From sequence record NC_061451.1: a DNA stretch of 64,000 bases; one strand, given 5' to 3'. Made by a program: the position numbers and the translations under genes. The notes under the pieces are model-generated. The model saw only the letters and a program-made list of their open reading frames with translations. It was not told the DNA's origin and searched no databases. Below are positions 12,547-61,990 of the stretch, piece after piece. The number at the start of each line of letters is the position of its first letter. The first letter of the stretch is position 1.

Positions 12547-13317
12547 ATGAGCAATATCGATACCACAATGCCTGAAGGCAAATGGGAGTTCAACGAGTCG
12601 GTTGCTTGCGTGTTTGATAACATGCTGCAAAACTCCATCCCATCTTATGGCCGTATGCGTGACCTGACGTACCGTCTGGGTCGTCGCTTCGTAACTCCCG
12701 GTTCAGCTATCGTTGATCTCGGTGCTTCACTCGGCCGAGCTATCGAGCCGTTTGCAAAAGAGTTCGGCAAGTATGACTATCATCATGCTGCGGACGCGCC
12801 GGGCGAAGACTACGAAACAGGCAATCACTATAGCCTGTATGAAGTAGCTCCTGCTATGCGCGAACGTCTGGTGCAGAATGAAGTGCTCAACTCAGTGAAT
12901 GCCAAACTGGAAAGTGAATCGCTGGTAGATACTGACACGTTTATGTTCGACGGTCAGGTGCATTGCTCGTTGATTCTGAGTGTGCTAACTCTCCAGTTCA
13001 CGCCGATTGAACATCGTCAACACATTCTGGAGAACGTGTACAACTCGCTGCAACCAGGCGGCGCATTCATCCTCGTTGAGAAGGTGTTAGGTGATAACAA
13101 CTATCTCGACAAAATGCTGGTGGACACCTACTACCAGATGAAGGGCGGTAACGGTTACAGCGCCGAGTCGATTGCGACTAAACGTAAGTCACTGGAAGGC
13201 GTACTCGTTCCTGTTAAAGCAGCATGGAACGAAGAACTGTTGCGTAAAGCAGGCTTCGGTCAGGTAGAAAGTTTCTATCGTGACCTGAACTTCGCAGGAT
13301 GGATTGCTATTAAGTAA
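12547..13317 (+). CDS. cmoA: CmoA-like carboxy-S-adenosylmethionine synthase
   Basis: WEFNESVACVFDNMLQNSIPSY, VDLGASLG, TLQF, PGGAFILVEK, NGYS...KRKSL (Arg199 equivalent at 13183-13185), AGF...F..LNF, collinear with E. coli CmoA as recalled. Confidence 0.9.
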   Translation: MSNIDTTMPEGKWEFNESVACVFDNMLQNSIPSYGRMRDLTYRLGRRFVTPGSAIVDLGASLGRAIEPFAKEFGKYDYHHAADAPGEDYETGNHYSLYEVAPAMRERLVQNEVLNSVNAKLESESLVDTDTFMFDGQVHCSLILSVLTLQFTPIEHRQHILENVYNSLQPGGAFILVEKVLGDNNYLDKMLVDTYYQMKGGNGYSAESIATKRKSLEGVLVPVKAAWNEELLRKAGFGQVESFYRDLNFAGWIAIK

Positions 13318-13326
13318 GGAAATACT

Positions 13327-14589
13327 ATGAAATTAAACGGGCGTATCTTAGCTATCGTCCCACACAAGACAATGCAAGACCGTACCAAGTCGGGTGTGGG
13401 TTCGTACATTGATGGGCTAGAGGCATACGGCTTCTGCGACTTTATCACAGACGGAGAGAACAGCTCCGTTACGAAAAGTCAGTGGTTCACTTATGGTGAC
13501 ACTACTCTCAGTGACGGTTATAAGATAGGGCATATCCAGAGCGAGTTGCTGATTGCACTTGAGCGCCTCCCATACCGTGCGATTATTTGCAGCACGTATG
13601 AGGCGATTGAAGCCTGTGTGTCTCTGGGACTGCCAAAGATTATGCCCGTTTACTATCGCACGCACAACAGCTTTTTGCTCACACAAGATCTCAAGGGTCT
13701 TGGTGCAGAGAAGATCCATCGTGCGTTGTTGCAAGCACGCGTCACAGGGCTGCGCATACTTGCTAACTGTGATTCGACTGCGATCAATCTTACTGAGCGC
13801 TATAAGACGCCAGCACACGTTGCCTACAACTCGTTCTCGGTGCCTGACTACAACCCACCAGCTCGGCGTTCTCCGCAACTGTTGATTATCTGTCGCTATG
13901 AGAAGGTCAAGCGCACGTTGTTTGCTGCGCGTATTGCTGCTGCATCAGGACTACCCGTTCGTGTTATGACAGGCAGTGATCGTCAAGCACGCAATTGGGA
14001 GAAAGAGCTGGCTGAGGCGGGCGTCAAAGAGTATACGGTCGTCAGTGGCCTTAGCGGCAAACAGAAACTCGAATTTATAGGCGCTTGCACCGTAGCCCTT
14101 TCTACTGCGAGCGTTGAATCATTTGCTAATGGTGTGCGTGAGTCTATCCCCTACTGTCCTACCTTTATCGTGCAAACATCCAAGTACGATTGGGCTAAGG
14201 ACTATACGCGCTTCTGTACCGCCGACAAGCATGTTCATATCAGAACTGTTGATCGCGTATCGGACCAAGCCGTAGCTGAAATCGGAAGTGAGATAGCGCA
14301 AACAGCTACCACTCGTTATCTGACAGGACCTCAGCGTAAGCAGCTACTGACTGCTTGGGCAAAGCAAGTTGATCGTGGTTGGTCCGACTTTGTTCAGAAG
14401 GCTGTTGTTGACGATGACGGCAAGCCGCTGCGCACCGAGCTGTATCAAGAACTGATCGACAAGTCAGAGATCGATTGGTCACAGACGCCCACGCTGATGC
14501 GTACTGTAAATGCGTTACATAAATGCCACGCTCGTTTGGGCCTGACATTTGATGGCACTAAAATCAAATATAAGAGGAAGCGCAAATGA
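13327..14589 (+). CDS. GT-B (GT4-like) glycosyltransferase
   Basis: SGVGSY N-terminal loop, CRYEKVKR, E-x7-E motif ESFANGVRE. Confidence 0.75.
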   Translation: MKLNGRILAIVPHKTMQDRTKSGVGSYIDGLEAYGFCDFITDGENSSVTKSQWFTYGDTTLSDGYKIGHIQSELLIALERLPYRAIICSTYEAIEACVSLGLPKIMPVYYRTHNSFLLTQDLKGLGAEKIHRALLQARVTGLRILANCDSTAINLTERYKTPAHVAYNSFSVPDYNPPARRSPQLLIICRYEKVKRTLFAARIAAASGLPVRVMTGSDRQARNWEKELAEAGVKEYTVVSGLSGKQKLEFIGACTVALSTASVESFANGVRESIPYCPTFIVQTSKYDWAKDYTRFCTADKHVHIRTVDRVSDQAVAEIGSEIAQTATTRYLTGPQRKQLLTAWAKQVDRGWSDFVQKAVVDDDGKPLRTELYQELIDKSEIDWSQTPTLMRTVNALHKCHARLGLTFDGTKIKYKRKRK

Positions 14590-15662
14590 GTGTTATCGGT
14601 GATATTTATAACATCCCACAACCGTTCGCAATGTATGTCGGGAATTGTGAGACGCGTGCTCAAGCCAAAGTTGCTGCTGGCACAATCGAGTGGGCGCCAG
14701 AGAAAGTGTGCTGCACCGTAGATGATGGTAACAACCTGTTCCCTAACGTACCTTCAATCAACCCTGCTGACGTGCATAAGACAGATGCAGAAACTTTAGT
14801 GATTGGCTGTGCACCTTTCGGCGGCCGCATTGACGAGCACATGGACAAAGCTATTCGTAGCGCTATCTATCGTGGCCGCAACATCGCTGCTGCTATGCAT
14901 ACGCGCCTGGCGGATAATCCTGAATACGTTGAGCTGGCTGATCGCTACAACGTCAAGCTGTATGACTTCCGCCATCGTCCTGATGCGTACCCACTCGGTA
15001 CTGGTGAGAAGCGTAGCGGTCTGCGTCTGTTAACTGTCGGTACTGATAGCTCATGCGGTAAGAAGTTTACCACGCTGTCTCTGTATCGTGAACTCAAAGC
15101 TATTCATGAAGCCACTACGTTCTGCTCTACTGGCCAGACGGGTTTCTTGATTAGCGGTTGCGGTATCAACAACGACACGATTGTTGCCGACTTCCTTGCT
15201 GGTGCCGCTGAATCACTTTCGCCTGATGGTCCTGCTGATCATGTTTATCTGATTGAGGGTCAAGGCGCTATCACGCACCCAGCATACACAGGCGGCAGTA
15301 TGAGTCTGATTGCTGGCTCGCAGCCTGATCATCTCATCCTGTGTCACGCATGGAACCGTCAGAATCAGTTGGGCGTTAAGCGTAAGCCTGACCTTGATTT
15401 CGAGATGCGTGCTAACATTGAAGCGGCACGTATTCACGGTCTCAACCCGACTTACATCGGTATCAGCATTAACTTCTCTGAGTGCGACCTCACCGCCGAT
15501 GAGCAAGATAAAATCCTGTACCAACTCGCATCAACGTATGAGATTCCCGTGTTCGACCCATCACAGGACACTTCTGTGTTGCGCGATCTCGCTCGTATGT
15601 TAGCAACTAAAGCCAAAGCAAGGAGCCTCGATGGCCAAGCATCAACTGCGCAAGCTGTTTGA
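14586..15662 (+). CDS. DUF1611 family protein (DgcN-like)
   Basis: LVIGCAPFGG, LLTVGTDSSCGKKFT, STGQTG, IEGQGAITHPAY, GSQPDHLILCH. Confidence 0.88.
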   Translation: MSVIGDIYNIPQPFAMYVGNCETRAQAKVAAGTIEWAPEKVCCTVDDGNNLFPNVPSINPADVHKTDAETLVIGCAPFGGRIDEHMDKAIRSAIYRGRNIAAAMHTRLADNPEYVELADRYNVKLYDFRHRPDAYPLGTGEKRSGLRLLTVGTDSSCGKKFTTLSLYRELKAIHEATTFCSTGQTGFLISGCGINNDTIVADFLAGAAESLSPDGPADHVYLIEGQGAITHPAYTGGSMSLIAGSQPDHLILCHAWNRQNQLGVKRKPDLDFEMRANIEAARIHGLNPTYIGISINFSECDLTADEQDKILYQLASTYEIPVFDPSQDTSVLRDLARMLATKAKARSLDGQASTAQAV

Positions 15663-16506
15663 ACAGCATGTGAAAAAAGAAGTGAAAGCAGACAAGGTAG
15701 CTGTGCTGCTTTCATCTGGCCTCGATGGTTTGGTCAGTGCGTTAGCTGCACACGACCTGGGCAAGAAGGTACATGCCTTCACATTCCAAATGGGTGACAA
15801 CCCTAGCTTTGACAGTCGCCACGCACAGGTCGTTGCACAGAAGATGGGATGGGAGTTCACTCTCGTTAAAGTTCCCACCAGCGTGTCTGCTATCGCGTTA
15901 GCGTGGCGCGTGCTACACTCCAAGTATCGCTGCATCAAGAAGCGTGACTATGAATGTGCGTACCCTATGGTCTATTGCTACAAGGCAATCAAAGACGCTG
16001 GGTATAAGTATGTGTTAAGCGGGCTGGTGGCCGATGGCTACTTCCTGTATAACCGTAACACGCACATTCAGAAAATCAGCGGCCCGCACTCTGACGCTCA
16101 GAAGTATCATGAGTTCCGTACTCAATACTTTAGTCCGTGGCTTAAACACGGTAAGAAGTCTCTGGGCGTTGACGGGTACAACCCGAGCGGTATGTTGCAG
16201 CATGAAATGTTGTGCGATAACTTCGGCCTGATTCACGTTAACCCGTGGATGCAGAACAAGGTGTTTGACTACTTCATCAAATACACTTGGCAGGAGCTGA
16301 ATCAGCCTAAGCAGAAGATGCCACTAACCGAAGCGTGGGCAGAACACATTGCTCTTGTTGGTCATCGCCCACACAGGGGCTATCAGACAGAAGCCAAAGT
16401 GCCTGAATACTTTGAGCATCTGATCGATAACCCTGAGATTAACTTTAACGGGCGCAAGCGCATCATGGACGTGGCACGCGACTGGTCCAAACGAGAGCCT
16501 GAATAA
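15631..16506 (+). CDS. AsnB-synthetase-domain ATP-dependent amide ligase lacking a glutaminase domain (CmoY-like)
   Basis: PP-loop LLSSGLDG, VLSGLVADGYF (AsnB VLSGEGADE), P..K..L; only 291 aa. Confidence 0.75.
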   Translation: MAKHQLRKLFEQHVKKEVKADKVAVLLSSGLDGLVSALAAHDLGKKVHAFTFQMGDNPSFDSRHAQVVAQKMGWEFTLVKVPTSVSAIALAWRVLHSKYRCIKKRDYECAYPMVYCYKAIKDAGYKYVLSGLVADGYFLYNRNTHIQKISGPHSDAQKYHEFRTQYFSPWLKHGKKSLGVDGYNPSGMLQHEMLCDNFGLIHVNPWMQNKVFDYFIKYTWQELNQPKQKMPLTEAWAEHIALVGHRPHRGYQTEAKVPEYFEHLIDNPEINFNGRKRIMDVARDWSKREPE

Positions 16507-28090: not shown

Positions 28091-29191
28091 ATGACAGGTC
28101 CTCTCGATCTCACTAACCCACAGCACTTCGAACTGTACTCGCTGCACAGCGTTGATGCACAGTATATCAATCTGTGTGACGCACTCCTCACTCAGGGTAC
28201 GCACGAATCTGACCCAGAGCGCACTACTGATACGTGGCATACGCTGATCGGTATTGGCTTCCAGTTGTCTAACACCAACATCGCTTTCCCTGCGCTGCTG
28301 TCTAAGCGTGTCAACGTCCGTGCAGCTATCGATGAATCATGCTGGTTCGCACGCGGTGAAACGAACATCGCAACTCTCGGTTCTAAAATCTGGAACGAGT
28401 GGGCAGACGAAGAAGGTGAGAACGGTCCTATCTACGGCTTCCAGTATCGCAACTGGCCTGACATTAAAGTGTTCAATACTGTCGAAGGTATGATTGAGCA
28501 GCACATCCCACCAGCAATGATTGAGCGCATCTCGAAAGAGATCAACCGCATGAAGGCGCAGGGCTATATCGAAACTGCGTTGCCTGATGGTCGCGTGCTG
28601 TATGAAGGCTATATCGATCAGTACGCTGATGCACTACGTCAAATCATGGCGCGTAGTCGTAGCCGCCGCATTCGTGTGCAAGCGTTCAACCCTGGTTACG
28701 TTGGTATGCAGAGCCTGCCTCCGTGTCACACTGAGTTTGAGTTCAACGTGACCAAAGCTACTGCGTATGAAATTGCGCAGATGGAAGCACGCTCAATGCG
28801 TCCTGACGCCGACTCACTGCATATCGTGGTGACGATGCGCAGCAATGATGCACTTCTCGGGCGCCCCTTCAACATCGTTGGCTACAGCGCCATGCACCAG
28901 TTGTTTGCGAAGTGGGCGGGTCTGAACGTTGGTTCGTTTACTCTGAATGTGACCAATATGCACATGTACGATCACCACCGCGAAGCGTATGCACAACAGC
29001 GTGAGCAGTGGCTGGAACTACAGACGCAGATGCAGACGACAGGCAAACCTGTTGTTTACCCTACCCTCGAAATCACTGACGACATTCTGGGCCTGACGCC
29101 AGAAGAGCTGCTGGATAACGTCAACGTCGATTGGTTCGAGCTGGTGGACTACTCTCCTAAACCTGCTGTTAAAGGACGCGTAACCAAATGA
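28091..29191 (+). CDS. thyA: thymidylate synthase
   Basis: IWNEWAD, GPIYGFQYRNW, SRR, LPPCH, RSND..LG.PFN, HMY. Confidence 0.93.
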   Translation: MTGPLDLTNPQHFELYSLHSVDAQYINLCDALLTQGTHESDPERTTDTWHTLIGIGFQLSNTNIAFPALLSKRVNVRAAIDESCWFARGETNIATLGSKIWNEWADEEGENGPIYGFQYRNWPDIKVFNTVEGMIEQHIPPAMIERISKEINRMKAQGYIETALPDGRVLYEGYIDQYADALRQIMARSRSRRIRVQAFNPGYVGMQSLPPCHTEFEFNVTKATAYEIAQMEARSMRPDADSLHIVVTMRSNDALLGRPFNIVGYSAMHQLFAKWAGLNVGSFTLNVTNMHMYDHHREAYAQQREQWLELQTQMQTTGKPVVYPTLEITDDILGLTPEELLDNVNVDWFELVDYSPKPAVKGRVTK

Positions 29192-31190: not shown

Positions 31191-31889
31191 ATGGCAAAAA
31201 TTGCTAAAGCAAAGGAAGGGAAAAAGAAAAGCAACCCTATGTTGATTGACCTGAAAAAGTTCAAGTCAGTTAAACAGCTTAAGGGTGCGAAGTACAACCC
31301 TCGTTTCATTACAGACAGCCGACTGAGAGCGCTCGAAGGTTCTTTGGGCAGCTTCGGTGATTTGTCTGGCGTGGTGTTCAACAACAGCGTAGACAGTGGC
31401 GTATTGATCTCAGGCCACCAGCGTCTCAAGTCGATTGAGAAGTGGGACTCGCGCATTGAGATTCAACAAACGTCTGACAAGTACGGCACGGTAGCGTTGG
31501 GTTATATCCATGCTACCAGCGCCAAAGGTAAAACGATCAGCATCCCACTGCGTATCGTTAACTGGTCAGATAAGAAAGTGGAGTTTGCTGCTAACATTGC
31601 TGCGAATGCCCACGGCGGTGAGTTCGATAACAAAAAGCTCGCGTCTCTTGTTGAGAAGCTGGACCTGACTACAATCAAGCCAGCTCTTATCGGGCTTGAC
31701 CCGTTAGAGATTCGCGGCCTGCAACAGACGCTGAGCAAACAAGCTATCGTCGAGCAGGAAAAGCGTGTTGGTAAAACAACAGGCAAAATGAACGGCAGTA
31801 CTGGCGAGTTCAAAGAGTACACGACTGATGAAGTTGGTACTGCGCTGACCTGCACCTGCCCACGTTGTGGCTTTAAGTTCGAGGGATAA
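31191..31889 (+). CDS. ParB/Srx-like domain protein with C-terminal Zn ribbon
   Basis: KYNPR, SFGDLSGVVFN, LISGHQRLK; CTCPRCGFKF. Confidence 0.8.
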   Translation: MAKIAKAKEGKKKSNPMLIDLKKFKSVKQLKGAKYNPRFITDSRLRALEGSLGSFGDLSGVVFNNSVDSGVLISGHQRLKSIEKWDSRIEIQQTSDKYGTVALGYIHATSAKGKTISIPLRIVNWSDKKVEFAANIAANAHGGEFDNKKLASLVEKLDLTTIKPALIGLDPLEIRGLQQTLSKQAIVEQEKRVGKTTGKMNGSTGEFKEYTTDEVGTALTCTCPRCGFKFEG

Positions 31890-31890
31890 C

Positions 31891-34026
31891 ATGATCATCA
31901 AGCCGCCTACAATGAAAGAGATTAATAAGCTGCCCAAGCCTTGGTCAGGTATGAGTTTCTTTGCAGGTTGCGGTGGTTCATCTACCGGTCACAAGATGGC
32001 CGGTATTAACATCCTACTGAGCAACGAGTTCGTGGACGCGGCTCGTGAATCGTATGAAGCGAACCATCCAACAACCAAAGTGTTGCCCCACGATATTCGT
32101 CGTCTTGACCCGAAAAAGCTGCTTAGCTATTGCGGCCTGAGTCAGGGCGAACTGGACTTGCTCGACGGCAGTCCTCCGTGCTTCACCGAAGACACGTTCA
32201 TTCATACCGACACTGGTATGAAGTTCATCACTGATATGCGCATCGGTGACTTCGCTATGACCTCTGTTGGTAAGTATCATCCAGTGTATGACACGATGGT
32301 ACGTCCGTATGACGGTCAGATGCACAGAATTGAAACGCTGCTTGGTCAGAACAATGCAACGCCTGAACATCCGTTCTTTGTTCGTCGTCAGAATGAAGAA
32401 ACTGGCGGGTACAGTGAGCCGTTCTGGTGTGACGCTAAAGATGTGCAGGAAGGTGACCTGTTAGGTACGCCTCGTGTTACGCCTGATATGGGCGAAGCAC
32501 ACACGCATGAGATTATCTCGTCGTTGACTGCGCAGCTTGTGCGTTGGATTGCATTGCCTGAGTTCTGGTGGCTGATTGGTCACTGGTGCAATCGCGGTGC
32601 AATCGATAAGATTCGTGGTGTCGATGTTATTCAATTCACCTCGATGACAGCGATGGAAAACTCGCTGGTGGAACAAGCGTTCGACGTGCTCAAGTTAAGC
32701 AGCATCAACAGCGCTTCGTCCGACATGGGCGTTCATCGTAAGACCGTTCGTGTTGTTATGGACACAGACCTGTTGCTGTTCTTGCGTATGTTTATCGCGC
32801 AGGGCAAGAAGTCTATGTCCCGCCGTCTGCCTGGCATGATCTTCCATCTGGCTAAAGAGCTGAAACAGCAATTCATTCTCGGCTATCTGGGTCGTGATTA
32901 CGTCACAGCAATGGGCGTTGGTCATGCGTTAGAGGCTGACTCAAAGCGCTTCCTAGTTGAGATGAATTACCTGTGCTGCTCTGCGTTCAACAGACCGCTG
33001 TTCGATGCAATGTTGTTCACTGACTTGCATTACGGTAGTCCGATGTTACCACCGAGTCGCTTCATTACCAAAGAGCACATCGGCTTCCTGTTCTTGCAAG
33101 AAGAGGTTAATTTCTTCTTTGAGTTCGAGCCGGAAGACCCGCATCTGTGGGTTGAAGTGATTGAGAACTTTACGCATCATGAAACGTGCAACGTCTATAA
33201 CTTCTCAGTCAGTGTTGATGAGACGTATGTTGCTAACGGCATGGTCGTGCATAACTGCAAAGGGTTCTCGACTGCTGGCGTGAAAGAAGACGGCTGGGGC
33301 AAAGAGGTTAAGTACAGCGGCAACAAGTATCAGCAAGTCGATGACCTGTTCGATCAGTATTGCCGTATGCTCAAGCACATGCAGCCTAAAACGTTCACTG
33401 CGGAAAACGTTAGTGGCCTCGTTAAAGGTGCGTCGAAGGGTTACTTCATTGAAATCATGAAGACCTTTGATCAGCTGGGCTACTATGTGCGAGCGCCGTT
33501 GCTTAATGCTGCGTGGCTTGGTGTGCCTCAGTCTCGTGAGCGTATCATCTTTATGGGTGTGCGCAAAGACGTGGCGAAAGCACTCGGCTATAAAACTGCG
33601 TTGACTGCTGTGCCTGATGTAACACCTCAATCAAGCATGGCGTTCCTTGCAGATGCATTGCCGAACATTCGTCGCTATAAAGGTACGGAGCGTGACATTA
33701 TCAAGTATCTGCCTGCTGTTAACGGCCCGATGCCTACGATTACCGCTGCTGATGCTATCGCATACGAAACAGCACGCTTCTCCTCTGCTGGCTTCATTGA
33801 AGACGACAAAGGGCACAGACGCAAGCTGACGATTGACGAACTCAAAGTTGTGTCAGGCATGCCTAGTGATTACGTGCTCACAGGTAAGTTTGAAGAACAA
33901 TGGGAACGTCTCGGTCGTGTGTGCGTACCTGCAATGACGTGTGCTGCGGCAAGCGCGTTGATACGCCATGTGCTTGAGCCTTACGCGAAGCTGCGTAAAA
34001 AGAAACCTGGGGATCGTTTTCGTTAA
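31891..34026 (+). CDS. DNA cytosine-C5 transferase (Dcm fold), predicted carboxymethyltransferase (CmoX-like), intein-containing
   Basis: Motif I FFAGCGG, IV GSPP|CKGFS, VI ENVSGL, VIII PQSRERI; motif X reads LGRVCVP instead of GN(S/A)V. Confidence 0.88.
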   Translation: MIIKPPTMKEINKLPKPWSGMSFFAGCGGSSTGHKMAGINILLSNEFVDAARESYEANHPTTKVLPHDIRRLDPKKLLSYCGLSQGELDLLDGSPPCFTEDTFIHTDTGMKFITDMRIGDFAMTSVGKYHPVYDTMVRPYDGQMHRIETLLGQNNATPEHPFFVRRQNEETGGYSEPFWCDAKDVQEGDLLGTPRVTPDMGEAHTHEIISSLTAQLVRWIALPEFWWLIGHWCNRGAIDKIRGVDVIQFTSMTAMENSLVEQAFDVLKLSSINSASSDMGVHRKTVRVVMDTDLLLFLRMFIAQGKKSMSRRLPGMIFHLAKELKQQFILGYLGRDYVTAMGVGHALEADSKRFLVEMNYLCCSAFNRPLFDAMLFTDLHYGSPMLPPSRFITKEHIGFLFLQEEVNFFFEFEPEDPHLWVEVIENFTHHETCNVYNFSVSVDETYVANGMVVHNCKGFSTAGVKEDGWGKEVKYSGNKYQQVDDLFDQYCRMLKHMQPKTFTAENVSGLVKGASKGYFIEIMKTFDQLGYYVRAPLLNAAWLGVPQSRERIIFMGVRKDVAKALGYKTALTAVPDVTPQSSMAFLADALPNIRRYKGTERDIIKYLPAVNGPMPTITAADAIAYETARFSSAGFIEDDKGHRRKLTIDELKVVSGMPSDYVLTGKFEEQWERLGRVCVPAMTCAAASALIRHVLEPYAKLRKKKPGDRFR
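32179..33255 (+). mobile_element. intein (359 aa) with degenerate LAGLIDADG endonuclease
   Basis: Starts CFTEDT, block B ATPEHPF, ends YVANGMVVHN; +1 residue is the catalytic Cys. Confidence 0.92.
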
Positions 34027-57720: not shown

Positions 57721-58776
57721 CTACAGCGAAACGGTTTTTGTTAGCGCAACGTCTGTGATAGTTGCTACGGATATCTGAGGGATATCGCCAGGCAGCGTAG
57801 ATGTAGCGTGAGTGAAGTCCGTACCTTCGCGCAGCACTTGCACCATACACGGATGCTGTGGGTCAAACGCTATTGGAAGCATAGCCCACGTCAGTTTGGT
57901 TGCTGGCGTATCAGCACGCGTAACAAGAGGCACAGAATACAGACGATCTGTTTCAACAAAGTTCGTGGTGTTATTCAGCGCACCCTTTGAGTATGATGTG
58001 CTGTACGACCAACCACCTCCTGAGAAATAGCGCGTACCGTACACGTTAGTTCTCCACGAATACAGAACACGCAGGCTTCTAGCAGGCGCAGAACTCAACG
58101 TAGTCTGAGCATTGGCTATGAGCGCACTCTGACCTACAATACCAGACCGCACCGTTACGTTCGTTGCGTCAGAGTAGGTATAGGTATCCATATAGACGTT
58201 AGTGATAGAGCTGGAATCACTAGAAGACCAGTTACCTATTGTGCCTATGTTACCACTGTTAGAGTCAGACATGGGTACAGTCACACCTGTCTGCACTGCA
58301 CACTTAGGGCTTAGGTTAGCTTCTGTGATTGTACTGTCAAATACAGGCAACAACATAGAAGCAGATGAAGGAATGCGCTTACCATCAATGTTCGTATTGT
58401 CCAGTAAGCTGCCTTGCATTGTAACAACAGAACCTTCTGCAAACAAAGTACCGACGCTGTAGTAGCGTCTGAATACTTCTTGAGGAGTCCAGACAACGGA
58501 TTCGGCAGCTGTAGGCAACGTTGACCCGTACGTAGGGTTATCTATCATTGTGTGATAGTATCGCATACTACGATAGCCTGCCATGCGCGTACATTGAAAG
58601 GTATCGTTTGCTACATACTGAGAGAACGAACGCGCCAAGTTAATCGTGTTCATTGCAGAGGCTGCGGTAGACTGTGCTGTTGGAGGAACTGTGTCATCCG
58701 TGAACAGAAATACCCTTCTTCTAGCTAGTGCTAGTTTCTTCTCCAACAGCTTAGCCCCACTTGAGGCAAATAACAT
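57721..58776 (-). CDS. putative fibre protein, MLFAS paralog 4
   Basis: MLFASSG...RRRVFLF; S/T/N/G-rich. Confidence 0.6.
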   Translation of the reverse strand: MLFASSGAKLLEKKLALARRRVFLFTDDTVPPTAQSTAASAMNTINLARSFSQYVANDTFQCTRMAGYRSMRYYHTMIDNPTYGSTLPTAAESVVWTPQEVFRRYYSVGTLFAEGSVVTMQGSLLDNTNIDGKRIPSSASMLLPVFDSTITEANLSPKCAVQTGVTVPMSDSNSGNIGTIGNWSSSDSSSITNVYMDTYTYSDATNVTVRSGIVGQSALIANAQTTLSSAPARSLRVLYSWRTNVYGTRYFSGGGWSYSTSYSKGALNNTTNFVETDRLYSVPLVTRADTPATKLTWAMLPIAFDPQHPCMVQVLREGTDFTHATSTLPGDIPQISVATITDVALTKTVSL

Positions 58777-58785
58777 AAACTCTCC

Positions 58786-59820
58786 TTAGACAGAGATAAC
58801 CGATGCAACCCCGGGGACAGCGAGCGTTTGGAGAAATGATACATCGGGCTCAACGTTTGTCTGTTGCTGTACGTTGTTTTTGAAGTCAGTACCTTTGCGG
58901 AAGATCTCACAGCTAATCTTCTCGCCGTTCCATATAGGACAGCCCAGCCATTCAATTTCGAATGCAGGAGTGTCAGCAGGCGCAGTTGACGCAAAGCCGA
59001 TCTTAACAACAGGCTTATGTTGAAGCGGAACGTCTACGTTACCTGGTCTGGAGTACGTCCAGGTATTCACGTTATTGCCTACAAGCGTGTTATAGATATA
59101 GTTCTGCACACCGTACACAGAGGCCATACCCGCAACAGGAGCGGAACCAAACAGTCGTATGATATTACCTATCGAGGAAGAACCAAAGCTGATGTTGCCT
59201 TGAGCATATGAGTTATCCTCAGTTCCGTACGAGGCTCTTGATGCAAAGTACGTGTAGCTCCAACTGTTGTTACTACCACTGCCAGACGAGTTGTATGTGC
59301 CAGTCCTATCAGGGAAGTGACCACCTACTCCGTAAAGAGACGCGTACTTCTTAGGAATCAGCACGGTCTTTATCGTGCCAACAACAGGCAGATGGCTAGG
59401 GTTATACGTGTCATAAGCAGAAGGTGCAGACAACGACACAGGACCTGCCAGTGGGTTAGCAAACGAATTGTCTGCATTTAGATAGCTCATCACACCGTGC
59501 TTGAGAGCGCGTTGTTGGGCAGTAAGCGTATCTGACATGCTGAATATCGGTGAGTTGTTCACAGTGCGCTCATAGGCATCATGATTCACCTCAGCAGGAA
59601 AGAAATACTGACTCGCAATGCCACTGCATGAACACCCGAGTAGTTTGTTGTCTGCTACACTATACCCGATAGAGCGAGCTTCTACCATATTCTTTACCCA
59701 TGCCACAGGGTCAGTGAGTGCAGCTTCTGGTGTTATTGAACTGTCAAACATGAAGGCACGCTTACGCGCAACAGCCATAAGCGTCTTCTGGATGTTTCCA
59801 CCTGACGATGCAAAAATCAT
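58786..59820 (-). CDS. putative fibre protein, MLFAS paralog 3
   Basis: MIFASSG...RKRAFMFDS. Confidence 0.6.
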   Translation of the reverse strand: MIFASSGGNIQKTLMAVARKRAFMFDSSITPEAALTDPVAWVKNMVEARSIGYSVADNKLLGCSCSGIASQYFFPAEVNHDAYERTVNNSPIFSMSDTLTAQQRALKHGVMSYLNADNSFANPLAGPVSLSAPSAYDTYNPSHLPVVGTIKTVLIPKKYASLYGVGGHFPDRTGTYNSSGSGSNNSWSYTYFASRASYGTEDNSYAQGNISFGSSSIGNIIRLFGSAPVAGMASVYGVQNYIYNTLVGNNVNTWTYSRPGNVDVPLQHKPVVKIGFASTAPADTPAFEIEWLGCPIWNGEKISCEIFRKGTDFKNNVQQQTNVEPDVSFLQTLAVPGVASVISV

Positions 59821-59829
59821 ATTATTGCC

Positions 59830-60927
59830 TCATAGCGTAATAGAGGACGGGGCATTGCACCAGTCTTTAACTGCTTGAGCAACTACCAAGTCAGCTTGTT
59901 GGGCTACTGTCGTCCCTGTCTGCTTAATATCGGCGGAATCGTCCTGTGCAATATCGAACATAGCGAGCCTGTACCCACCAACAGTCTCGTAAGCAATGGC
60001 ACCAACAGTCAGCACACACGCACCATCATCAGCCATGCCTGTTACAATGACAGAAGGAACATCGGGAATAGTCATTGCATTCTGATCTGCGTTCGGCGTT
60101 AGTCCTTCATTGAATGAGTTGTTAGTGGTGCCTCCACCTATAGGGTACGTGGTGAAGCGCCGCTCCTGCATAGTGATTACCATAGCGCCCGACACCGTGT
60201 TGAATGCCTGGGGATCGAATACATCTGCCCAATTGCCATTCCCGCCATAAGTCGTATCGTTCGGCAGCATAATATCAATATAGTTTTGCGCCTGATAAGT
60301 ATTAGGTATAGGGTAGAACACAGCAGACGAATAGAACTGGTCATAGTAATAGTTAACACCAGATTGACCTGAACTACGAAACGATATTGTCGCGTTATTG
60401 AGAAACTTAGGCTGGTACTGCGTCTTATTCTTCGTACTACGCATACTGGTGACGATGCGCTGCGGATAAAGATACAAGCGAGAGGCCAGCTTTGCTTTAT
60501 CGTACTGCCCAACAAGAGTAGAGCCAAGAATGTTGCTCGTCTTGTCTCCGATAGTACCCCTGGGTGCGAGATACTTCACGGTGCAATAGCGGTCAGCTTG
60601 TTGGTCTGGCGTGTTGCCGTCTGAGGAAACGTTATACATGCCATTCCATGAAGCACTATTCGACGCGTTGTTCTGGTTGAATAGCTGAATGTTTGCGCTG
60701 TGTGCAGGGTAATAGCGATTGGACTTTACACCACTAAGCGCTGTTGATTTAAGAGCGTCTACGGTACCGCAAGTCATCGCACGACATTCAGGCACGGACT
60801 GTAATAGATACTGGCGTGCTTGTCTGATAGTGTCTTTGCTGATTGTGCTGTCAAACAGATATAAGGAGGACATTGCACGAGTTCGCACAGCTTTATCTCG
60901 TACTCCTCCTACGGAAGCGAATAGCAT
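59830..60927 (-). CDS. putative fibre protein, MLFAS paralog 2
   Basis: MLFASVG...MSSLYLFDS. Confidence 0.6.
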   Translation of the reverse strand: MLFASVGGVRDKAVRTRAMSSLYLFDSTISKDTIRQARQYLLQSVPECRAMTCGTVDALKSTALSGVKSNRYYPAHSANIQLFNQNNASNSASWNGMYNVSSDGNTPDQQADRYCTVKYLAPRGTIGDKTSNILGSTLVGQYDKAKLASRLYLYPQRIVTSMRSTKNKTQYQPKFLNNATISFRSSGQSGVNYYYDQFYSSAVFYPIPNTYQAQNYIDIMLPNDTTYGGNGNWADVFDPQAFNTVSGAMVITMQERRFTTYPIGGGTTNNSFNEGLTPNADQNAMTIPDVPSVIVTGMADDGACVLTVGAIAYETVGGYRLAMFDIAQDDSADIKQTGTTVAQQADLVVAQAVKDWCNAPSSITL

Positions 60928-60934
60928 AGCTACC

Positions 60935-61990
60935 TCATATTGTGTAGGACTTCGTTGTTACTAAGGCAGCTAACACAGCACTTGAACAAGTGAAGGCAGG
61001 CTGAGTGCCGACCGAAGTACCTGTCGTCAGTGTTAGGTCTGAGCCAATGTCCATTACCATAAGCTCGCTGGACTGTTCAGTGGCTACAGCGATAGCGCCA
61101 AAGCTCAGTGCTGCATCCGGGTCATCGGCCTGAGTAACATCAATGTATGGCAGTTCGACACATACCTCATTGGGTGTACCGTTTCGCCAGTTCTGACCAC
61201 TACCGTAGCTCGTATACCACGTGGCGTTAGCAAACCATGTACGCGTGTAGTTATATTGTGGGTTTATCATGTACAGACCGCCATACTCCGTACGCAGCGC
61301 ACCTAACGCAGTAGGCGTACTGTTTTCATAGTAACCAGCACCAACAGGGAAAGATACACCAGGCATCGTCCAGAATCGAGAAACACCAGAACCCAGAGAG
61401 ATGAATCCAGGAGTTATGCTCTGCGTATAATCAAAGTAGTCCGTGCTTGTACCTGTACGTCCTCCCATCGTGCTCTTTGGTCGGAGTTTAACGGACTTGC
61501 CGCCAAACAAAGAAAGCCGGGATGTAGGCAGCAGATACGTACGGCTCATGCTATCGAATGAAGTAACACCACCGTAACCAGATTGCGTACCGAGCATGTT
61601 GCCTGTAGCGACATCAAAAGCAGCTTTAGTTGCAGGCGAGGCTACCGTAACAAAACGCGCAGCATAGTTCTCAACAGTCTGACCGTCGCTTATGCCATTT
61701 GTCAGACGGAAGAACCAACCGTTGTTACTGGACACAGGACTGAACTGACCGATACGTCCTGTATGCGACAAATAAAACTTATTGTTCTTTATACCGCCTA
61801 TAGCAGTAGCATCCAGAGTATTACCTGTCATTGTGTGCGTGCAGCTACGCGCTTCATGGCACACGTTCAGCAAACCTACAGGGGTGCGAACATTCTGTTT
61901 GTCTACGGACGTGTCAAACAAAAATAGGTGCTGCATAGCGGACTTGCGAATGTTTTCCTGTATAACAGCTCCAGCAGAAACGAATAGCAT
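60935..61990 (-). CDS. putative fibre protein, MLFAS paralog 1
   Basis: AGGAG RBS; MLFVSAG...MQHLFLFDT. Confidence 0.6.
   Translation of the reverse strand: MLFVSAGAVIQENIRKSAMQHLFLFDTSVDKQNVRTPVGLLNVCHEARSCTHTMTGNTLDATAIGGIKNNKFYLSHTGRIGQFSPVSSNNGWFFRLTNGISDGQTVENYAARFVTVASPATKAAFDVATGNMLGTQSGYGGVTSFDSMSRTYLLPTSRLSLFGGKSVKLRPKSTMGGRTGTSTDYFDYTQSITPGFISLGSGVSRFWTMPGVSFPVGAGYYENSTPTALGALRTEYGGLYMINPQYNYTRTWFANATWYTSYGSGQNWRNGTPNEVCVELPYIDVTQADDPDAALSFGAIAVATEQSSELMVMDIGSDLTLTTGTSVGTQPAFTCSSAVLAALVTTKSYTI

Follow-up and report, generated by a model that had tools for sequence, protein, structure and literature searches.

Erwinia phage pEa_SNUABM_7, a 265,635-bp jumbo myovirus of the genus Snuvirus whose host is Erwinia amylovora, carries a gene, gp018, for a predicted glycosyltransferase (GT) among homologues of the genes that make and amidate 5-carboxymethylcytosine (5cxmC) in phage DNA. 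Which molecule might such an enzyme glycosylate? We addressed this question from the first 64,000 bases of the genome (bases 1-64000 of NC_061451.1 / MZ475896.1; the window, in which coordinates are those of the record), for which a preliminary description had named the gp018 product a GT4 glycosyltransferase with no obvious hydroxymethylated base to act on. The open reading frame lies on the plus strand at 13327-14589, as that description gave it, and we verified its ATG at 13327, its TGA at 14587-14589 and its length of 420 aa. It is labeled "hypothetical protein" in RefSeq. Comparison with the orthologue in phage pEa_SNUABM_3 (79% identical) gives a ratio of nonsynonymous to synonymous substitution rates (dN/dS) of 0.07; gp018 is a real gene under strong purifying selection. 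A tblastn search of the whole 265.6-kb genome found no paralogue of it.

The gene is the second of four on the plus strand: a cmoA-like gene (12547-13317), gp018, a DUF1611 gene (gp019, 14586-15662), and an asparagine-synthetase-like gene, cmoY (15631-16506). The spacer between cmoA and gp018 is only 9 nt long and contains an AAGGA ribosome-binding site, which bears out the earlier statement that gp018 directly follows cmoA. The gp018 stop and the DUF1611 start overlap as ATGA, and the DUF1611 and cmoY genes overlap by 32 nt; no promoter or terminator signal above chance was seen in the operon region. By its arrangement, gp018 is predicted to be translationally coupled within a cmoA-DUF1611-cmoY operon.

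The flanking products resemble enzymes of a known DNA modification pathway. The CmoA homologue, a putative carboxy-S-adenosylmethionine (carboxy-SAM) synthase, matches TIGR00740 (E 1.2e-39, below the cut-off) and phrog_4752, and is 28% identical to SpCmoA of Synechococcus phage S-B43 (E 3e-25). The CmoY homologue, assigned by Pfam Asn_synthase and by its likeness to SpCmoY (33% identity over 275 aa, nearly full length, E 1e-50), is a putative ATP-dependent amide ligase without a glutaminase domain; SpCmoY itself is an ATP-dependent ligase proven to turn 5cxmC in DNA into its glycine amide (PMC12783734). The gp019 protein matches Pfam DUF1611_N and DUF1611, NCBIfam DgcN over its full length (E 2e-86; 290 bits, against an equivalog cut-off of 480), and PDB 7xrj (E 4e-53); literature on DUF1611 is minimal. 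With a CmoX homologue 17 kb downstream of the operon, discussed below, pEa_SNUABM_7 has by homology the complete CmoA/CmoX/CmoY tool-kit.

Fold, motifs and charge of gp018

On its own, the gp018 sequence has no match in Pfam (even at E<=10), PHROG, NCBIfam, or the PDB sequences, so that a profile of the family and a structural model were needed to name it. HMMER, run exhaustively against 1.84 billion representatives, retrieved 101 relatives, 8 of them at E<=1e-30 and the others at ~1e-16 to 1e-4, mostly 430-470 aa long. In an alignment of 40 of these relatives (A1), G23, H113, K195, K247, and E264 never vary, R190 and E272 hardly ever do, and G25 is kept in at least 90% of the sequences; in the narrower alignment of the close family (A2), H113, R190, K195, E264, and E272 are all invariant. 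The Pfam family Glycos_transf_1 (PF00534) is matched by 29 of the 40 aligned relatives. Searched against the PDB, the family profile finds the group-1 glycosyltransferases 7ec1/7ec7 (E 5e-8), as well as CapJ, WbnH, WlaC, and tetrahydrobiopterin glucosyltransferase, and the Arg/Lys pair and E-x7-E motif of the family align with those of 7ec7 (which has ARYSPEK at the R-x4-K position).

The structure model points the same way. An AlphaFold2 model built on the family alignment (predicted local distance difference test [pLDDT] 92.6, predicted template-modeling score [pTM] 0.90) has 178 Foldseek matches in the PDB at E<=1e-3, with template-modeling (TM) scores of 0.5-0.6. The top 50 are nearly all GT-B enzymes, accompanied by two pseudo-glycosyltransferases and one sucrose-phosphate-synthase-like protein; SenB (2.7e-12), GlgM, TarM, SdgB, GtfA, BshA (TMq up to 0.60), and PimA are among the matches. 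Searching BFVD with the same model returned generic viral group-1 glycosyltransferases only. The predicted protein has an N-terminal domain (~residues 1-175), a nucleotide-sugar domain (~176-330), and a basic, family-specific C-terminal extension (331-420). It shows the GT-B architecture of two Rossmann-like domains separated by a cleft, with a helix at the C terminus that crosses back. All the conserved motifs lie on the plus strand: the G23-V-G25 glycine loop of the N-terminal Rossmann-like domain, conserved across the 40 sequences (13393-13401); His113 in YRTHN, also in the N-domain and invariant in both alignments (13663-13665); Arg190-x4-Lys195, a motif that typically binds the diphosphate in GT4 enzymes (13894-13911); and Glu264-x7-Glu272 (14116-14142), the last two identified in A2 and by alignment to 7ec7. 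Judged from the family profile, these motifs, PF00534 hits in relatives, fold matches, and dN/dS, gp018 is a very divergent GT4-like GT-B enzyme, predicted to be catalytically active since its motifs are intact; by sequence it is a divergent relative of PF00534 and not a member at model level. The GT-B/GT4 assignment of the preliminary description is thereby confirmed.

Is there anything about this protein that speaks to the kind of acceptor it uses? All 13 members of the cmo-linked GT family are basic, with isoelectric points (pI) of 8.85-9.48 and net charges of +7 to +18, whereas the outgroup has a median pI of 5.9 (27 members). The excess charge is concentrated in the C-terminal extension (median +8 in the family vs. 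-4 in the outgroup), and family members end in Lys/Arg tails such as KYKRKRK. In gp018 this extension includes a basic C-terminal mini-domain (14389-14586, plus strand; pI 9.6) modeled as helix-strand-helix-hairpin with the KYKRKRK end, which is a candidate DNA-binding element. A uniformly basic family fits a polyanionic acceptor, and a Lys/Arg tail of this kind is as would be expected for a DNA-directed enzyme.

The outgroup itself consists of proteins of 430-470 aa from T4-like cyanophages and Xanthomonas phage, encoded next to PTPS and GTP cyclohydrolase I or next to NAD salvage genes. In two cyanophage loci (L003:7743-9086 and L031:8001-9359) the gene lies beside those for GTP cyclohydrolase I and PTPS/QueD, and one phage also has QueE. 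We considered and rejected these proteins as DNA enzymes: their PTPS/GTP cyclohydrolase I context and acidic pI indicate pterin-type small-molecule glycosylation. This context and pI, together with the PDB match to a pterin glucosyltransferase, make them look like small-molecule enzymes, and they serve as an outgroup rather than as support; they may be glycosyltransferases of pterins or of deazapurine precursors.

Linkage of the glycosyltransferase to 5cxmC genes

How widespread is the association between this glycosyltransferase and the cmo genes? Exact-protein look-ups provided genomic context for 11 GT lineages (contigs labeled L0xx) that are 25-47% identical to each other or to gp018; a family-alignment scan of IMG/VR gave only Erwinia phage relatives. 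In 10 of the 11 lineages the GT lies directly beside a gene of the cmo module (CmoA, CmoX, DUF1611, or CmoY), in a variety of orders: CmoA-GT-DUF1611-racemase-CmoY-DAHP synthase (L004/L006), ParB-CmoX-GT-DUF1611-CmoY-CmoA (L007-L009), ParB-CmoX-CmoA-GT-DUF1611-racemase-CmoY (L021/L022), GT-DUF1611-racemase-CmoY (L019), CmoX-GT-DUF1611 (L018), CmoX-GT (L036), GT-DUF1611 (L010, L035), and CmoA-GT-CmoY, without DUF1611 (L011). Adjacency kept in several gene orders speaks for function rather than inherited gene order. The tie between the GT and the 5cxmC pathway is thus well supported, by operon coupling in pEa_SNUABM_7 and by these lineages, and the link drawn in the preliminary description holds.

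Two further genes recur in these clusters. The DgcN-like gene is present in all sister clusters but one, and an alanine/serine-racemase-like gene (~310 aa) follows DUF1611 in most of the distant clusters and in pEa_SNUABM_3 (L024:6324-7259). Together they point to D-amino-acid chemistry, which had not been considered previously, and hint at a D-amino acid in the amide arm. We also observed that a DAHP synthase gene ends the metagenomic CmoA-GT-DUF1611-racemase-CmoY cluster (L004:14162-15025, L006:4509-5372), where it may boost the shikimate pathway and so supply prephenate for CmoA.

In phages closely related to pEa_SNUABM_7, the GT gene comes and goes as a cassette, always at the same place in the genome. 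What follows cmoA differs between otherwise collinear Erwinia and Dickeya jumbo phages (window 12547-16506; in relatives L023:5234-7933, L024:3253-8131, L033:3642-6233, and L034:3044-4737). Dickeya phage AD1 has cmoA-DUF1611-cmoY, with a CmoY 87% identical to that of pEa_SNUABM_7 and no GT anywhere in its record; pEa_SNUABM_7 has cmoA-GT-DUF1611-cmoY; and pEa_SNUABM_3 has GT, DUF1611, an alanine/serine-racemase-like gene, and CmoY. Phage Y3 has cmoA with a different ligase type and a 2-oxoglutarate (2OG)-Fe(II) oxygenase, and pEa_SNUABM_5 has cmoA with the same ligase type as Y3. CmoY is nearly unchanged whether or not a GT accompanies it, which suggests a GT step that follows ligation or is independent of it.

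The third pathway gene encodes a CmoX-type DNA cytosine-C5 carboxymethyltransferase (31891-34026, plus strand; 711 aa with its intein; Pfam DNA_methylase, Hint_2, and Intein_splicing). Among PDB entries, 8yf3_A matches it best, by a wide margin (E 1.7e-54), and the Arg of "LGRV" in the phage protein aligns with that of "VGR350M" in 8yf3_A, at a position that is Asn in ordinary C5 methylases ("GN" in HaeIII); R350 of SpCmoX is the carboxymethyl-binding residue (PMC12783734). The gene is divided into an N-extein (31891-32178), an intein (32179-33255), and a C-extein (33256-34026). The intein, 359 aa from Cys97 ("CFTEDT") to "VVHN," abuts the catalytic Cys of motif IV, Cys456, which is its +1 residue (GSPP-intein-CKGFSTAG). 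CmoX is therefore expected to be inactive before splicing; removal of the intein restores GSPPC. Inteins occupy the same site in Dickeya phage AD1 (62% identical) and L007 (19% identical), and the site is empty in L009, L018, L021, L036, and S-B43. Directly upstream of CmoX is a ParB-like gene (31191-31889, plus strand; RefSeq annotation), found in the same place in L007, L009, and L021, an association noted for the published system too (PMC12783734).

Elsewhere in the window, on the minus strand at 57721-61990, four successive open reading frames of ~350 aa (57721-58776, 58786-59820, 59830-60927, and 60935-61990) resemble a tandem array of paralogues, judged by size and spacing alone.

Candidate acceptors and the order of steps

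What, then, might gp018 do in this pathway? We give an about even chance to the reading in which it is a predicted retaining-type GT-B (GT4-like) enzyme that serves as an optional tailoring step of 5-carboxymethylcytosine hypermodification. CmoA would convert SAM and prephenate to carboxy-SAM, with which intein-spliced CmoX would carboxymethylate C5 of cytosines in phage DNA; the CmoY homologue would then adenylate the 5cxmC carboxylate and couple an amine to it, probably an amino acid, which may have the D configuration given the racemase and DgcN-like genes in such clusters. The GT, its basic C-terminal extension holding the DNA, would use a host nucleotide sugar as donor of a hexose or N-acetylhexosamine and place this sugar on a hydroxyl of the arm, and the product, a glycosylated carboxymethyl-amide cytosine, would hinder host nucleases.

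In this scheme the acceptor may be a hydroxyl on the amide arm, as the preliminary description had proposed with Ser or Thr as examples. The placing of the enzyme with the 5cxmC genes stands; the choice of a Ser/Thr hydroxyl is less secure, since the only characterized CmoY adds glycine, which is without a hydroxyl (PMC12783734). A Ser/Thr hydroxyl is a plausible choice; for the racemase-bearing relatives, D-Ser is one candidate. The glycine precedent is one of several points that weigh against the tailoring reading. A fold search with the isolated C-terminal mini-domain (model pLDDT 74) listed many winged-helix DNA binders, none of them significant (best E 0.69), and no nucleotide-sugar synthesis genes were seen in pEa_SNUABM_7. 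The scheme does not account for the DgcN-like protein. One lineage of the 11, L017, known from a 3.8-kb contig, has no cmo neighbor beside its GT. Finally, the nearest relatives outside the family resemble small-molecule (pterin-type) glycosyltransferases, which makes a small-molecule acceptor possible.

A more specific version of the tailoring reading is tentative, and we lean somewhat against its holding in full. It describes a three-part cytosine hypermodification, made up of the C5-carboxymethyl group, an amide-linked and possibly D-configured amino acid, and a sugar added by gp018, with the cmoA-proximal island (GT, DgcN-like gene, racemase, and the 2OG oxygenase of Y3) as a swappable tool-kit that would diversify the arm.

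Might the sugar instead be attached before ligation? The GT would then act on a small molecule such as a hydroxy-amino acid, and CmoY would ligate the resulting glycosylated amine, so that the GT would never touch DNA. In favor of this order, the closest relatives of gp018 in structure and sequence include GT4 enzymes with small-molecule substrates, among them BshA (TMq 0.60), SenB, and a tetrahydrobiopterin glucosyltransferase, and the outgroup adjoins PTPS and GTP cyclohydrolase I in cyanophages. AD1, however, keeps its 87%-identical CmoY in the absence of a GT, so the ligase substrate is unlikely to be GT-dependent, and neither the uniformly basic pI nor the Lys/Arg tail, which the outgroup does not have, is expected of a small-molecule enzyme. 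We therefore regard a sugar-first order as unlikely.

A target that has nothing to do with DNA, such as a phage or host protein or a polymer of the host envelope, with the GT a mere passenger among the cmo genes, is distinctly unlikely. The GT's place next to cmo genes in 10 of 11 lineages, in varied orders (on the CmoX or the CmoA side), and its translational coupling are hard to square with hitch-hiking, and neither a signal peptide nor a membrane feature was noted for the gp018 model. What favors such a target is the presence, among the top PDB matches, of the pneumococcal O-GlcNAc transferase GtfA, SdgB, and TarM (with a ribitol-phosphate ligand). We take SdgB and GtfA to be Ser-O-GlcNAc transferases of surface proteins and TarM to be a wall-teichoic-acid enzyme; envelope-modifying glycosyltransferases occur in phages.

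A third alternative, which we rank lower again and consider improbable, retains the DNA acceptor and dispenses with the hydroxyl: the sugar would be attached either to a carboxylate, that of 5cxmC or that of the amino acid coupled to it, as an acyl (ester) glycoside, or to an amide nitrogen, as an N-glycoside. The synteny and charge evidence applies to it just as to the tailoring reading, and under it even an arm of the glycine type found in S-B43 could carry a sugar. Yet carboxylates and amides do not figure as acceptors in the descriptions of the GT4-type structural matches found here. Enzymes that form ester links or glycosylate the Asn nitrogen fall into other GT-B families.

Could a classical hydroxymethyl handle be made elsewhere in the genome? 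Our Pfam scan covered ~135 proteins genome-wide, nearly all genes of 150-200 aa or more, with proteins under ~150 aa mostly left out; among these, over 265.6 kb, there was no TET/JBP protein, no 2OG oxygenase, and no second protein of the thymidylate-synthase family, and tblastn across the genome found no ThyA paralogue. The search for makers of hydroxymethylated cytosine or uracil, which the preliminary description had put forward as a check, accordingly found none. The scan turned up a GT2 protein (gp154), one radical-SAM protein, and dUTPase; dCMP deaminase and thymidylate kinase are annotated in the record. The second glycosyltransferase gene, gp154, encodes a GT2 (GT-A) enzyme annotated as beta-1,4-glycosyltransferase and lies outside the window (record 114092-115324, minus strand), one gene away from an NAD-dependent DNA ligase gene.

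The single ThyA homologue (28091-29191; 366 aa) has IWNEW, GPIYG, LPPCH (residues 209-213), and PFN (259-261), scores above the TIGR03284 cut-off, and finds thymidylate synthases as its best PDB matches. The motifs named in the preliminary description, LPPCH and PFN, are thus indeed those of a canonical ThyA. Relative to bacterial enzymes it has an insertion of ~50 aa (residues 125-173), which is kept in AD1. Asn rather than Asp in PFN excludes dCMP as substrate, and we rejected a dCMP hydroxymethylase identity for this reason; the earlier statement that no TET/JBP protein or dCMP hydroxymethylase is visible in the window stands. The ThyA argument does not by itself exclude a dUMP hydroxymethylase, because PPCH and PFN fit both enzymes, but such an activity is unlikely given that the homologue is kept at 73% identity in AD1, which has no GT.

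The classical route, with 5-hydroxymethyl-uracil or -cytosine supplied as acceptor by this ThyA homologue or by an undetected enzyme, is the least likely of all and in our view very improbable: motifs expected also in a dUMP hydroxymethylase and the unusual insertion speak for it, while against it stand the TIGR03284 score and retained IWNEW and GPIYG, the Asn in PFN, the homologue in GT-less AD1, the dCMP deaminase, thymidylate kinase, and dUTPase annotated or detected, the negative genome-wide searches, and the linkage of metagenomic GT relatives to cmo genes and not to ThyA homologues.

Comparison with known systems

Natural 5cxmC and its glycine amide were first reported in December 2025 (PMC12783734), in the S-B43 system, in which CmoA, CmoX, and CmoY act together and 5cxmC is turned into 5-glycylcarboxymethylcytosine (Yang et al., Nat Commun 2025, PMC12783734). 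That report, which counts 2,251 CmoY-type ligases, raises the question of which other amide modifications exist (PMC12783734), and the locus described here offers a concrete case, with a GT and a DgcN-like gene in the operon, joined in sister phages by a racemase or an oxygenase. The main text of the report makes no mention of glycosyltransferases, DUF1611, a racemase-like protein, inteins, or Erwinia phages (PMC12783734), and our literature search found no paper joining CmoA, phage, and glycosyltransferase. If gp018 does place a sugar on the arm, the product would be the first glycosylated DNA base independent of a hydroxymethyl handle; the known chemistry of phage anti-restriction camouflage would be widened, and the enzymes could be used for site-directed DNA functionalization by successive carboxymethylation, amidation, and glycosylation. 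AD1 (no GT), pEa_SNUABM_7 (GT), and pEa_SNUABM_3 (GT and racemase) are natural, near-isogenic comparators.

How does the Erwinia phage locus compare with S-B43? Homologues of all three S-B43 proteins are present in pEa_SNUABM_7, its CmoX has the SPPC motif and the carboxylate-binding Arg, and a ParB-like gene lies beside CmoX. The two systems differ in that the ligase operon of pEa_SNUABM_7 adds a GT4-like glycosyltransferase and a DgcN-like DUF1611 protein, to which the sister phages add an alanine/serine-racemase-like protein, and in that its CmoX gene, 17 kb distant from cmoA, is interrupted by an intein. DgcN itself is a D-glutamate N-acetyltransferase of bacterial D-amino-acid catabolism; gp019 is a phage-encoded homologue, fixed in position between GT and CmoY.

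The alpha- and beta-glucosyltransferases of T4 and the glycosyltransferases of TET-encoding phages act on 5-hydroxymethylpyrimidines. Like them, gp018 is a predicted GT-B-type enzyme encoded beside genes that make a handle at C5 of a pyrimidine, with nuclease protection as the presumed purpose. Unlike them, it would use a carboxymethyl-amide arm as its handle, no maker of a hydroxymethyl handle having been detected in pEa_SNUABM_7, and it has no detectable sequence relationship to them; the only such match, 29th in the BFVD ranking, was a Cyanophage S-TIM5 protein with the generic label "DNA alpha-GT."

With the retaining GT4-type enzymes (BshA, SdgB/GtfA, TarM, PimA, SenB, and tetrahydrobiopterin glucosyltransferase), gp018 has in common the two-Rossmann fold, the glycine loop, the His, R-x4-K, and E-x7-E, at just 11-16% identity. 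What sets it apart from these enzymes is its family-specific basic C-terminal mini-domain and tail, and a genomic context that points to a DNA-linked acceptor.

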